Shown here: piece by piece, positions 2,512-19,471 of the stretch
Layout: each line of letters begins with the position of its first letter
Numbering within the stretch: the stretch's first letter is position 1
NCBI RefSeq assembly: GCF_018350175.1
Contig: NC_058379.1
Span: 29,884,001 to 29,948,000 of the forward strand
Reading direction: 5' to 3'
Source: Felis catus
Lineage: Eukaryota
DNA: 64,000 nt
The notes under the pieces: model-generated
Told to the model about the DNA's origin: nothing
The model's input: only the letters and a program-made list of their open reading frames with translations
Databases searched by the model: none
Made by a program: the position numbers and the translations under genes

Positions 2512-2610
2512 ATTTAGGGCAGTGTCCTGCTCCTGACCATCTGTGCGGCTGGCATTGGTGGGACTTTTCAATTTGGCTACAACCTCTCCATCATCAGTGC
2601 CCCGATGTTG
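2512..2610 (+). pseudogene. SLC2A11: SLC2A11 exon 2 (TM1), with in-frame TAG at the Gln position of IQG
   Basis: ctcctcag|ATT TAG GGC AGT GTC CTG ... GCC CCG ATG TTG|gtatgt; reads I*GSVLLLTICAAGIGGTFQFGYNLSIISAPML, 99 nt. Confidence 0.92.
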
Positions 2611-4690
2611 GTATGTATCCTCTGTACTCACCGTCACCGTCCCAGTGGGTTCTGGGTGAGGGCTAACAGCTGCCCACTGTGGGGCTTCGGGCCAGCATCC
2701 ACTTGGTGGCACTTTCTCCCATGTGTCCACTTTCACTGGGATGTCCCATTGGTCCTGTGGATTCAAATTCAAACCCACCTCTACATCCTCTCTTGAACCT
2801 GCACGTCCTCCTGGGTCCCTGATGTCAGCAGATAACTCTACTGTCTGCCCAGTGACTGGGGGTCAGCCTTGACTCTGGCCCCCTTCCCCTCAAACATTGA
2901 GTCCTTGCTCATTACCTCTAGCTAGCCATTTCTCCCCGTGTCTCTGCCATGACTCCAGTTCAGATCCCATCTTTCCTGCCTGGATTGCTGGCTTAGCCTC
3001 CTCATTGGCATCTCTGCCTTCAGCCTCTCAAGTTTGATCAAGCCACTTCCCTGCCCAGAAACATTCTGTGCCTGTAGGAATCAGGACAGACTCATCCACC
3101 TGAAGTTCAAGGCCTTCTTGATCAGAACCTGCCCGCCTGTCTTCCACCTTTATTCCCTGAACCCCACTAGCAAAGCAGGTTAAATGCAGTTCCTCAAATG
3201 CACACAGCCCTCTCTTTAAGCCTCCTTTGTTTGGGAAGCCCTCTCCACTGCATCTGCAGAAGCCCCACAAGAACCACCCAAACATCCTGCCTTCCTTCAA
3301 TAGTCTCTGGCTGGAAGTCACCCCTCCATCCCCAGCCCTTTGTGCTGACTGTCACCACTCAGGTTGCATGTCGGCTGTTTGCAACCTCCTGCTGGTTTGC
3401 TCTGAGTGTCTGAATCATCTTTGTGCCCCCAGCACCTGATGCTGACCTGACCCATGTTGATGTTCAGTGGTGCCCATGGAAAAGGTGAATCTTCCAGCCC
3501 ATTGATAAAAACTGGCCTGTAACTTAAATCAGAAGGGTGAGTGTCCTGTCCCATAGCTGGGAAGGTTGTGGGGCTGCACACTGTAGGTGCAGGGGAAAGA
3601 GCTGCAGGAAGCAGGTCCCAGGACAGAAGTGCAGCTGTCTTCTCCCTGCCTGTCCTGTTCCCTCTACCCTCCTCATTCAGTGACAAGAGGGCAACTGTAC
3701 CAGACTGACTTCCTGCCAGTTGGAAACCCCCAAAGGAAAGTCCTCCCTAGTAGTTCCAGCTGAAAGGTCTGGGAAGAGTCCGATTGGCTGATTTGGATCA
3801 TATTCAGGCCAGCCAATCATGTGATCAAGAGGTGGAGCCCTCCCATTGGCCAGTCTGAGTCAGATGACCACCTTTGGACAGGACAGGCTGTAACTGGGGA
3901 TGGGAGAGAAGTCCCCAAAGGAAGAGAGGATAGCCTAGCAGAAGCCAGGGTGGGACCACATTCTGGGCAGAAACAGTGATAGCAGCCCAATGCCTTAAAG
4001 AAAGGATGAAATTCAGGGCTTAGAAAGGGAGGTCTGAGCTAGCTGTATTTGCTTGTTTATTTGTTCATTCAACACACATGTGAGTGCCCACTTCACAGTA
4101 CACTTACAGGCTGGAGAAGGATCCACCTGCAACAGGCACTCTTGGGCTTTATCTCCCATGGGCCATCCCCAGCCTCCCAAAATAGGACTTTCTTGGCCTC
4201 AGAGGCTCCTCCTAATCCCCTGGATGGTCATTCTTGAGGAGTTTCCGCCAAGGGACAGGGAGGCTTGCCCTGGTCCTAGCTCCCCTGGACAGTCTTTCCC
4301 CCAGAGGGAGCTGGCGGGTGCTAGGCTTGACAGCCATTACCCTGAGCTGGCCTGAGCAGAGGAGAGCTGTCCCGACCCTTAAACTCACTGTCCTCCTCAG
4401 GTCCTCCCTCACATCCTGTTGGGAGGCCTGAGATCAGCCAGACACTGACATTTCATCTCTAAGCAAGTGAAGTATGCCCGGGTCTTGCCCAAGTGCAATC
4501 CTTCCTAACCATTTGGCCTCCATTCACTTCCCTGAAACTGAAGCTCTGGGGGTGGGGCCCTGGGGTGTCCTAACTACCTGGCTTCAGCCCTGACCTGTGG
4601 CTGAAGCCGTGGGCAAGTCCTTCCACTTCCCCAGGCCTAGTGCCAGTCTAAACAGTGAACACAGTAATGTGTATCTAACAGAGTACTTCT

Positions 4691-4906
4691 TTTTTTTTTT
4701 TTTCAACGTTTATTTATTTTTGGGACAGAGAGAGACAGAGCATGAACGGGGGAGGGGCAGAGAGAGAGGGAGACACAGAATCGGAAACAGGCTCCAGGCT
4801 CTGAGCCATCAGCCCAGAGCCTGACGCAGGGCTCGAACTCCCTGACCGCGAGATCGTGACCTGGCTGAAGTCGGACGCTTAACCGACTGCGCCACCCAGG
4901 CGCCCC
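4691..4906 (-). mobile_element. Young feline Can-SINE (SINEC_Fc-type) in SLC2A11 intron 2
   Basis: tRNA-derived head ggggcgcctgggtggcgcagtcgg, (CT)n, A tail; perfect 15-bp TSD taacagagtacttct (4676-4690, 4907-4921). Confidence 0.95.
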
Positions 4907-5508
4907 TAACAGAGTACTTCTAAGGGCTGTGAAAATTGGGGTCCCAAGGAAATGAGTGGCACACTCCAGATAAACCAAGCAGGTTTAGATACCACAAGGG
5001 ATGATTTACAAAGGTTGAGTGGGGCAGAGACAACACACAAGACCAGGGAGAGTCCAGTAACGCCAGAGTCATTACTACTCCTACCCCCAAAGGGACTCTT
5101 GGAAGGAGTCTGGAAACTGGAAAGAAAGAGCCATATGGAGTAGGACCCCTTGAGAGGAGCAGTGACCTTTGGTTGAGTGTCACAGCCAGCCTGGGGTGAC
5201 CTGGGAACAAACACCCCTTCTGCCTCTCTCTGATGCCCTGCTGGTGCTCACCATTGGCCAAGTCCAAGTCCAACAGAAAGCCAGTCAGCAAGGAGCCCCC
5301 TGATGCAGGTGGATTCTTGGACCAAAAGCAGGAGGACAAGGGGTGAAGTGGACTCTGAAGGGCAAACAGAGACTGTTCCTGCCCCCTGGCTGGGGAGCAG
5401 TATTGCTCAGGACTTGGTGCCTGCTCTGCAGAGGCAGAGCCCTGTGGAGGGGAAGGCCTATTGTATCCAGCCTGTCCCTGGGAAGTTGACCGGTATCTCT
5501 GTCCACAG

Positions 5509-5669
5509 CCCATCCAGGAATTCATCAATGAGACATGGCAGGTGCGTACTGGCCAGCCACTGCCCGACCACCTAATTCTGCTTGTGTGGTCCCTCATCGT
5601 GTCTCCGTACCCCCTGGGGGGCCTCTTTGGAGCACTGCTTGCTGGGCCCCTGGCCATCATATTGGGAAG
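5509..5669 (+). pseudogene. SLC2A11: SLC2A11 exon 3
   Basis: ccacag|PIQEFINETWQVRTGQPLPDHLILLVWSLIVSPYPLGGLFGALLAGPLAIILG(R)|gtaagg, 161 nt. Confidence 0.95.
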
Positions 5670-6024
5670 GTAAGGGCTTTCTGGGTACACCCCAAATGCC
5701 CTTTGATGATTGGTACCCCAGTCTGTAAGCTGAGGAATGTGAGAGAAGGAAGATGCCCTGTAGGCCCAGGCCTAGGTCAGCTCCCCAGCCTCCTACCCTA
5801 CCTGTAGTTTCACCACAAGAGTCACATTTCCAAGTGGATTTGGTAGAGGGAAGAGCCCTGTGTCCTGAGGGAGGGAGGACTCCTTGTTTCCAGTTCCATT
5901 TCTCCAGCAAGTGATATTGGACCGTAAACAAGTATTTCCTCTTCAGGCCTCATTCCCCTCTCTGTATCCAACTGATGCAGTCTTGGGGTGCAAACAAGAC
6001 GGGCTCATAATGAATGAATAAATT

Positions 6025-6029
<5 letters not shown>

Positions 6030-6094
<65 letters not shown>
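6030..6094 (+). repeat. (GAAA)n tetranucleotide microsatellite
   Basis: Long perfect GAAA run. Confidence 0.95.
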
Positions 6095-6096
<2 letters not shown>

Positions 6097-6106
6097 GAAA
6101 AAGAGG

Positions 6107-18065: not shown

Positions 18066-18100
<35 letters not shown>

Positions 18101-18436
18101 TTTTGAGAGAGAGAGAGCATGAATAAGGGAGGGGCAGAGAGAGAGAGAGGAGAGAGAGAGGGTGAGAGAGAATCCCAAGCATCACAGAGCTGTCAGCACA
18201 GAGCTCAGTGTGGGGCTGGAACCTGCAAACCTTGAGATCATGACCTGAGCCGAAACCAAGAGTGGGTGCTTAACCCACTCAGGCCCCCCCTAATAATGTC
18301 TTAATCTCCTGAAGCAATCAACTGCTCCTAATTGCTCCCTCACACACACCTGGAGCTGCCCACTGCTGGCCTTTAAACCAAAGGAAGCATGCTTCCAGCG
18401 CACAGGTCAGTTACTGAGAGCTCCTTTCCTTTGCAG

Positions 18437-18538
18437 TGTGCAGTGATAGAGATGGTGGGCCGCCGGAAGCTGTCGATAGCGGGGTATGGTCTGATGGCCT
18501 GCTGTGGAAGTATCTTTACAGTGGCCTTGTGCCTGCAG
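18437..18538 (+). pseudogene. SLC2A11: SLC2A11 exon 9
   Basis: ttgcag|CAVIEMVGRRKLSIAGYGLMACCGSIFTVALCLQ|gtagtg, 102 nt. Confidence 0.93.
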
Positions 18539-18620
18539 GTAGTGGGGCTGGGCATGAGGGTTGTGGCTTGGGGCAGCCTGGTCTCCACCTCACTTCACCC
18601 CCTCTGCCCCTTTGCTGTAG

Positions 18621-18696
18621 AGCCCCCTCCCCTGGATGCCCTACCTGGCCATGTTCTGCGTCTTTGCCTTCATCCTCAGCTTTGGCCTTGGCCCTG
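18621..18696 (+). pseudogene. SLC2A11: SLC2A11 exon 10
   Basis: ctgtag|SPLPWMPYLAMFCVFAFILSFGLGP|gtgagt, 76 nt. Confidence 0.93.
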
Positions 18697-18931
18697 GTGA
18701 GTGGGCCCAAGGAGCTCTGCACTTTGGGCTTTGCCAAAGGAACACGAATGTCTTCATGAATGACAAGTGGCTATAAATGCAATGTCACCCGCATGCCCTG
18801 CCACCCAGCCCCCCTGTACTGGGGCTTCTGGGAGGGAATGGCTGGAGAAGAGGACAAGGGGCCCCCACTCCTATGTTGGGGACAAGGTGGCAGCCCTGGC
18901 TGGCAGCCCCTGTCCCTGCTCTTCCTTCTAG

Positions 18932-19059
18932 CCGGAGTGACAGGGATTCTGGCCATGGAGCTCTTTGACCAGAAGGCCCGGCCTGCTGCCTCTATGGTCT
19001 GCCGGGTGCTCATGTGGACCATGCTCTTCCTGGTCAGGCTGGGGTTTCCCTTCATCATG
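18932..19059 (+). pseudogene. SLC2A11: SLC2A11 exon 11
   Basis: ttctag|(A)GVTGILAMELFDQKARPAASMVCRVLMWTMLFLVRLGFPFIM|gtaggc, 128 nt. Confidence 0.93.
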
Positions 19060-19270
19060 GTAGGCACCCTCCCCACCCTTCCCTTGCCTTAGGTTTTCCC
19101 CTGTGTCTGCAGGAGAGCCCCAGTGGGAAGTCTCCATCCTGGGAGCCTGAGGCTGGAGGGGATGGGACTCAAAAAGAGGGACAAATCCCTCATCATGACC
19201 TGTCATGTGGCCTTATGTCTGGTCCTGAACAGGGCACACACCAGGTCTCAGAGACTCTTTTCACTCACAG

Positions 19271-19471
19271 GAGGGCTTGTCCCACTTTCTTTATGTGCCT
19301 TTCCTGGGTGTTTGTGTCTGTGGGACCATCTGTACTGGCTTCTTCCTTCCCAAGACCAAAGGCAAGACCTTCCTGGAGATCTCTGAGGAACTTCACAGAC
19401 TCAACTTCCCTAGGCAGAGCCAGGGCCCTGAGTGGCTGGGCCCGGAAGTCATCCAGGCCACAGAGCTGTAG
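19271..19471 (+). pseudogene. SLC2A11: SLC2A11 exon 12 (terminal coding exon)
   Basis: tcacag|EGLSHFLYVPFLGVCVCGTICTGFFLPKTKGKTFLEISEELHRLNFPRQSQGPEWLGPEVIQATEL*. Confidence 0.95.

Follow-up and report, generated by a model that had tools for sequence, protein, structure and literature searches.

Two private lesions in the domestic cat SLC2A11 (GLUT11) gene point to a young unitary pseudogene on a background of relaxed constraint in Felidae

Does the domestic cat still make GLUT11, the class II facilitative glucose/fructose transporter encoded by SLC2A11? The question is raised by a 64,000-nucleotide (nt) stretch of the Felis catus genome (assembly GCF_018350175.1, contig NC_058379.1, positions 29,884,001 to 29,948,000 of the forward strand; hereafter the window, to which all coordinates without a locus label refer), in which exons 2 to 12 of the gene lie. 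A preliminary description of this DNA, made from its letters, had proposed that SLC2A11 is inactivated in this felid, and our analysis leads to the same answer: two independent lesions break the open reading frame (ORF), no second copy was found to stand in for it, and the annotated cat models merely steer around the lesions. Given that the ORF-disrupting lesions are derived, that a second copy is lacking and that selection is relaxed in the felid crown, cat SLC2A11 is probably a young unitary pseudogene, set on a background of felid-wide relaxed constraint.

Two lesions of the cat gene and their ancestral state

The gene in the window is the single-copy SLC2A11 orthologue of the domestic cat, at the orthologous locus. 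When the full protein was searched, the top matches were mammalian SLC2A11 proteins (73-94% identity), and a query of a 1.8-billion-protein library with the C-terminal exon likewise returned GLUT11 proteins. The other GLUT loci of the cat genome share only 23-49% identity with SLC2A11, and the search of the cat genome yielded no second high-identity copy, the sole further trace being a decayed SLC2A11-like fossil within the window itself (Table 1). The conserved neighbour MIF follows downstream on the same strand, thereby confirming the orthologous synteny of the gene.

Two features of the coding sequence are incompatible with a full-length product, namely a TAG in exon 2 and a 1-nt deletion at the start of exon 8; both had been read from the sequence in the preliminary description, and both are borne out here. 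We collected the orthologous loci of seven further felids (Prionailurus bengalensis, Panthera tigris, a second Panthera, Neofelis nebulosa, Leopardus geoffroyi, Lynx pardinus and Puma concolor) and of three outgroups (Hyaena, Ailuropoda and Halichoerus), and aligned each exon as DNA. At the exon-2 site, nine of the 10 orthologues read CAG and the remaining one, Prionailurus, reads CGG, such that the C at 2515 is present in all 10. Exon 8 of the cat, 110 nt long instead of 111, opens with GTG TAG CC from 17774, and its conserved frame (AYASSVF...) resumes at 17779, whereas the same site is an undeleted TAC or TAT in 10 of 10 orthologues. Both lesions, found in the cat only, are derived and private to the cat lineage. 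Being absent from Prionailurus and from all other orthologues aligned, they are also younger than the Felis-Prionailurus split. The polarity of the exon-8 deletion had earlier been argued from the fossil in the window, which aligns to exon 8 and reads GTG CAT GCT at 28916-28924; this argument holds, and is now superseded by the orthologues.

As for what the deletion strikes, the lost exon-8 Tyr falls, in an alignment with GLUT5 and GLUT9, on their NAIY/NAIW stretch, which corresponds to transmembrane segment (TM) 7b, whose residues gate the transporter and occlude the substrate site (PMC7462842). The cat protein also carries private residue changes in exon 3 (L to P at 5605-5607 and V to I at 5575-5577) and, within a transmembrane segment, in exon 11 (G to R, codon AGG, at 19036-19038). 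Otherwise, the 11 coding exons, all splice sites and exon 1A with its ATG are intact, which argues that the inactivation was recent.

Lesions, motifs and selection across Felidae

The assemblies of other felid lineages carry lesions of their own. In Puma concolor, the intron-5 donor has changed from GT to AT (L003:19277-19278) and a CAG has become TAG 16 codons before the normal stop (L003:24646-24648), which is where the NCBI protein P0157 ends; the puma lesions are independent of the cat's. In Neofelis nebulosa, exon 9 lacks 4 nt at its end (L008 ~22280-22292; 98 vs 102 nt), a deletion with which the frame shifts when canonical sites are used, the NCBI 'partial' model staying in frame only via non-canonical borders. 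In Lynx pardinus, an 89-bp deletion (L007 ~19450; window equivalent 18409-18497) has taken away the exon-9 acceptor together with the first 61 nt of the exon, and because exon 9 is also skipped in the models of Lynx canadensis (P0235) and of a Lynx-like species (P0237, XP_046946162.1), this lesion may be common to the genus Lynx. No disabling lesion in exons 2-12 is shared among the eight felids.

Upstream of these exons, Panthera, Neofelis and hyena keep the ATG start codon of exon 1B, the codon at this site being AGG in Prionailurus, Puma, Leopardus and Lynx, and AAG in the cat; among the cats sampled, the non-pantherine ones have lost isoform B. Exon 1A (MRSLQRL, L019:8676) is found with its ATG intact in every felid locus reaching that far.

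Two signature motifs, PESPR and PETKG, are not intact in the cat, where they read PESSR and PKTKG, a departure that bears on function and not on orthology. The Glu of PETKG is present in 133 of 133 non-felid GLUT11 proteins with a recognisable motif, as well as in the solved GLUT5 and GLUT9, and is replaced by Lys in every felid. PESPR is read by 157 of the 160 non-felid GLUT11 proteins in which the motif is recognisable, and its proline is kept in the solved GLUT3, GLUT5 and GLUT7. The codon of this proline (codon 206) changed from CCA to CCG in the Lynx/Puma/Prionailurus/Felis group, and the proline was then replaced in three independent ways, by TCG in the cat, CTG in Prionailurus (the leopard cat) and TTG in the puma. 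A further felid change, R to M in the TM8-9 motif (E-R-x-G-R-R), was considered as a functional hit and rejected, because the residue there is L in GLUT5 and H in GLUT9 and varies among GLUT11 proteins.

Selection was assessed using our own GY94+F3x4 branch model, whose one-ratio (M0) fit reproduces that of IQ-TREE (log likelihood -3811.10, omega, i.e., dN/dS, 0.382 and kappa 5.26). Omega was 0.27 on the background of non-felid carnivorans and 0.41 on the stem branch of the felids, vs 0.80 within their crown (profile interval ~0.5-1.3); the crown differed from the rest of the tree (p=0.00016), and a crown omega of 1 was not rejected (p=0.34). In line with this estimate, IQ-TREE gave an omega of 0.836 for the felids only. 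The private felid codon changes comprise 33 nonsynonymous and 13 synonymous ones, vs a mutational expectation of ~2.1:1, and two nonsense mutations were seen vs ~2.4 expected under neutrality. Taken together, these results support the conclusion that purifying selection is relaxed across crown Felidae, where the gene evolves nearly neutrally.

Several observations weigh against a dead cat gene on such a background. With all felids taken together, an omega of 1 was rejected (p=0.015), and some constraint therefore persisted, at least on the stem. The cat branch alone gave an omega of 0.35 (7 nonsynonymous and 6 synonymous private changes), unlike what a long-dead gene would show; this value does not differ significantly from that of the felid crown (p=0.07) and is unexplained, and the counts may simply be small. 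Exons 2-12 are open in the tiger, the second Panthera, Leopardus and Prionailurus, and NCBI still lists cat SLC2A11 as protein-coding. Finally, the exon-2 TAG rests on one assembly, the independent contigs described below backing the exon-8 deletion only. Among the felid terminal branches, that of the cat is, incidentally, the longest (0.034 substitutions per codon), and a low omega is odd for a lineage whose frame is broken.

We propose the following course of events. Constraint on GLUT11 would have relaxed across crown Felidae (omega ~0.8), with the E to K change in PETKG carried by all cats. In the cat lineage, the change of CAG to TAG in codon 2 of exon 2 broke the frame before TM1, and a second break came with the loss of 1 nt from codon 2 of exon 8, which belongs to the gating helix TM7b and now gives an immediate TAG. 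The genus Lynx, Puma and Neofelis would each have been broken separately, by different lesions of their own. We infer that the two cat lesions are fixed in cats.

How far back the loss reaches is a separate matter. TAS1R2 is the sweet-receptor pseudogene of Felidae, its lesions being shared across the family, and SLC2A11 could by analogy have been lost once, in the felid ancestor, through a diet-driven event that left a shared inactivating mutation. Felids are hypercarnivores, the E to K change in PETKG is common to all of them and accompanies 22 fixed residue changes on the stem, the crown omega is compatible with 1, and no non-pantherine cat sampled retains the start codon of exon 1B. However, exons 2-12 of the eight felids hold no common ORF-disrupting lesion and are open in four species, the stem omega and the rejection of neutrality for all felids point to lingering constraint, and exon 1A keeps its ATG in the felid loci that reach it. 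Moreover, an annotated full-length SLC2A11 is kept in other strict carnivores (hyena, seals, cetaceans, mustelids and polar bear), while rodents, which are not carnivores, have lost the gene. A single ancient loss of this kind therefore appears rather unlikely. Both genes are sugar-related and disabled in cats, yet each affected lineage (cat, Lynx, Puma and Neofelis) has SLC2A11 lesions of its own, and several felids retain an open frame. The family-wide pattern of TAS1R2, with which the preliminary description had compared the case, is not seen here, the cat lesions being absent from the seven other felids. Its broader idea of a diet-related felid loss fares better in part: relaxed constraint, the felid-only change in PETKG and the lesions in Lynx, Puma and Neofelis agree with it, whereas the lack of a shared lesion and the other strict carnivores that keep the gene do not. 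A link between the loss and diet may nonetheless exist.

We also put forward, tentatively, another reading: the transport function or the usefulness of GLUT11 may have been lost at the base of Felidae, with the Glu to Lys change in PETKG as the candidate first hit, followed by neutral drift and by breakage lineage by lineage (so far the domestic cat, the genus Lynx, the puma and the clouded leopard). If this is true, SLC2A11 would show us a loss still under way across the whole family, and cats would be giving up one more sugar-handling function. The near-neutral evolution of the gene, combined with the differing lesions, makes it possible to test when the loss took place, and whether the change from PETKG to PKTKG had already killed the transporter.

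Support for the lesion alleles and the annotated products

The reading as a young pseudogene presupposes that the lesions are real and common, and it is conceivable that one or both of them are assembly errors or rare variants of a private haplotype, most cats being intact. The sequence comes from a single long-read assembly of the haplotype type, where errors are most often single-base indels, and the cat-branch omega of 0.35 would suit a gene that is still constrained. The exon-8 deletion, however, can be followed outside the reference, because it joins exon 7, intron 7 and exon 8 into one 187-codon open frame. A search with this frame returned P0218 (Logan and ENA, two contigs) and P0238 (ENA, two contigs), both with cat-type residues and the deleted frame '...PGVAYASSVFRQ'. 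The deletion allele is thus present on four short Logan/ENA contigs that are independent of the reference, and no cat-type undeleted exon-8 ORF was found among the ORFs from the same search, in which Panthera-type contigs (P0219 and P0239) showed the undeleted exon-8 frame. Furthermore, two disabling changes and five further private residue changes (including PESPR to PESSR and the transmembrane Gly to Arg) in one coding sequence of 1.47 kb are unlikely to be errors, and a stop-creating substitution is a rare type of error. The identical 447-amino-acid NCBI cat model also bears a UniParc number far older than those of the neighbouring accessions, which suggests that an earlier cat assembly gave the same lesion-avoiding model and that this model predates the assembly analysed here. 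With this evidence in hand, an artefact or private haplotype seems improbable.

Two further searches were neutral in this respect. For a 2.1-kb stretch, 17 sequencing runs held at least half of the sampled words (0.81-0.94; 14 labelled DNA, five studies); since the word share of a run is unable to resolve one base, these runs are evidence for neither allele. When metagenome contigs were scanned for exact patterns of the two lesion sites, neither gave a match.

The annotated cat models P0165 (UniProt), P0170 (NCBI isoform X2) and P0206 (NCBI isoform X3) share all of the window's private residues (HLILL, VSPYP, KELQG, RKLLGD, PESSR and LVRLG). They avoid the lesions only by means of a dropped codon, a downstream Met start, a cryptic acceptor or retention of intron 7, and all three bypass the exon-2 TAG. 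Isoform X2 (447 amino acids) is without TM1 and without 11 residues of TM7b, while isoform X3 (405 amino acids) starts in exon 4 and retains intron 7, such that ~31 foreign residues lie inside TM7b; without the 1-nt deletion, the retained intron would be out of frame. Judging from these sequences, neither product would be expected to keep the 12-TM fold of the major facilitator superfamily. From the position of both stops, the transcripts would be expected to undergo nonsense-mediated decay, and any products that are made would be without TM1 or have TM7b disrupted, leaving the cat, in all likelihood, with no functional transporter. A search of the protein collection found no transcript-derived cat SLC2A11 ORF.

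That the gene nevertheless functions through these isoforms, by way of the downstream Met and cryptic acceptor (X2) or of intron-7 retention (X3), is most improbable: intron 7, 94 nt long, is free of in-frame stops and does read through given the deletion, and NCBI lists both proteins, but X2 has lost TM1 and part of TM7b, X3 has foreign residues inside its gating helix, both are computational models, and similar intron-7-retaining models exist for a Panthera species whose exon 8 is intact.

These latter models are instructive in their own right. The NCBI 'LOW QUALITY PROTEIN' entries P0163 and P0153 (Panthera) and P0237 (Lynx-like) retain intron 7 and read '...PGVAYASS', as though the exon-8 deletion were common to a Panthera. 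This possibility was rejected for P0153 and P0163, as the DNA of the locus (L002) has an intact TAT; their reading therefore appears to be an annotation artefact, possibly resulting from alignment to the cat's intron-retaining model. The annotation is thus misleading, the cat gene being protein-coding only through truncated or intron-retaining models, with similar ones in a Panthera and the Lynx-like species.

Parallels and map of the locus

GLUT11 is a glucose/fructose carrier of muscle and heart for which there is no mouse model, because rodents lack GLUT11, and the domestic cat is a clinically studied, diabetes-prone species. If its SLC2A11 is indeed dead, the cat would be a natural GLUT11 knockout and a second mammalian lineage living without GLUT11, and the loss would be one more sign that sugar handling is reduced in cats. 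According to a review, mice have no GLUT11 and the transporter is likely non-essential (PMC7462842), SLC2A11 being missing from both mouse and rat (Scheepers et al. 2005, as cited in PMC7462842). Rodents and the cat are thus alike as lineages that have each lost this apparently non-essential transporter; they differ in that the mouse gene is absent, whereas the cat gene is structurally complete and carries two disabling point lesions, and the cat loss would therefore be much younger than the rodent loss, and independent of it. We consider the finding modest, since dispensable transporter genes are known to be lost in this way. The literature searched, the coverage of which is incomplete, contained no report that cats or other felids have lost SLC2A11, so that its novelty is unproven; the loss in the cat is apparently unreported so far.

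Human SLC2A11 provides the intact counterpart. It is likewise adjacent to MIF and agrees with the cat gene in its layout of 12 exons, the first of which has the alternatives 1A (MRSLQRL) and 1B (MEYEPE...); the two proteins share ~77% identity, and their matches to the Pfam profile Sugar_tr (PF00083) are collinear. The cat copy differs in its exon-2 nonsense codon, its exon-8 frameshift, and PESSR and PKTKG in place of PESPR and PETKG.

The 11 coding exons (E2-E12) were mapped on the + strand from stop-to-stop reading frames and splice signals, and all 11 have canonical AG/GT borders (Table 1). Cat exon 2 is 97-99% identical to exon 2 of the seven other felids in the DNA alignment. Along the 452 positions of Sugar_tr, the exons match in order: E3 at 30-74, E4 at 76-115, E5 at 121-159, E6 at 168-206, E9 at 310-339, E11 at 370-410 and E12 at 417-451. 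The run of N inside intron 3 hides no exon, because E3 and E4 share a split codon and adjoin in the profile, and because the flanks of the gap are collinear in six other felids, where they lie 98-114 nt apart.

Table 1. Features of the cat SLC2A11 locus and its surroundings (window coordinates unless a locus label is given)
Feature	Position	Strand	Remarks
Exon 1B start codon	L019:9159-9161 (C27:29,883,159-61)		cat codon AAG; outside the window, 840 nt upstream
Exon 2 (TM1)	2512-2610	+	99 nt; AG/GT splice sites intact
Premature stop TAG	2515-2517	+	codon 2 of exon 2; ancestral CAG (Gln)
First in-frame ATG after the TAG	2605-2607	+	end of exon 2; start of isoform X2 (P0170)
Exon 3	5509-5669	+	frames, Sugar_tr profile match
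Assembly gap (N)	9550-9681		inside intron 3, between E3 and E4
Exon 4	13003-13127	+	frames, Sugar_tr profile match, orthologue alignment
Exon 5	13927-14056	+	frames, Sugar_tr profile match, orthologue alignment
Exon 6	14609-14757	+	frames, Sugar_tr profile match
PESPR to PESSR, P to S (TCG)	14709-14711	+	exon 6; cat-private
Exon 7	17492-17679	+	frames, orthologue alignment
Intron 7	17680-17773	+	94 nt, without in-frame stop
Exon 8 (TM7b/TM8)	17774-17883	+	110 nt vs 111 expected
Frameshift site	17777-17779	+	third base of the codon-2 Tyr of exon 8 missing, giving an in-frame TAG
Cryptic AG acceptor in exon 8	17804-17805	+	X2 thereby skips 11 TM7b codons (VYAYASSVFRQ equivalent)
Exon 9	18437-18538	+	frames, Sugar_tr profile match
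Exon 10	18621-18696	+	frames, orthologue alignment
Exon 11	18932-19059	+	frames, Sugar_tr profile match
Exon 12	19271-19471	+	normal stop at 19469-19471
PETKG to PKTKG, E to K (AAG)	19352-19354	+	exon 12; common to all felids
Decayed SLC2A11-like paralogue fossil	27105-29025	+	between SLC2A11 and MIF
Fossil exon-6-like piece	27105-27230	+	71% protein identity
Fossil exon-8-like piece	~28916-29025	+	internal deletions and a stop; aligns to exon 8
MIF start	35387-35500	+	conserved downstream neighbour, same strand as SLC2A11

Further runs of N are present downstream of SLC2A11, at 24343-24474 (132 nt) and 25351-25661 (311 nt).

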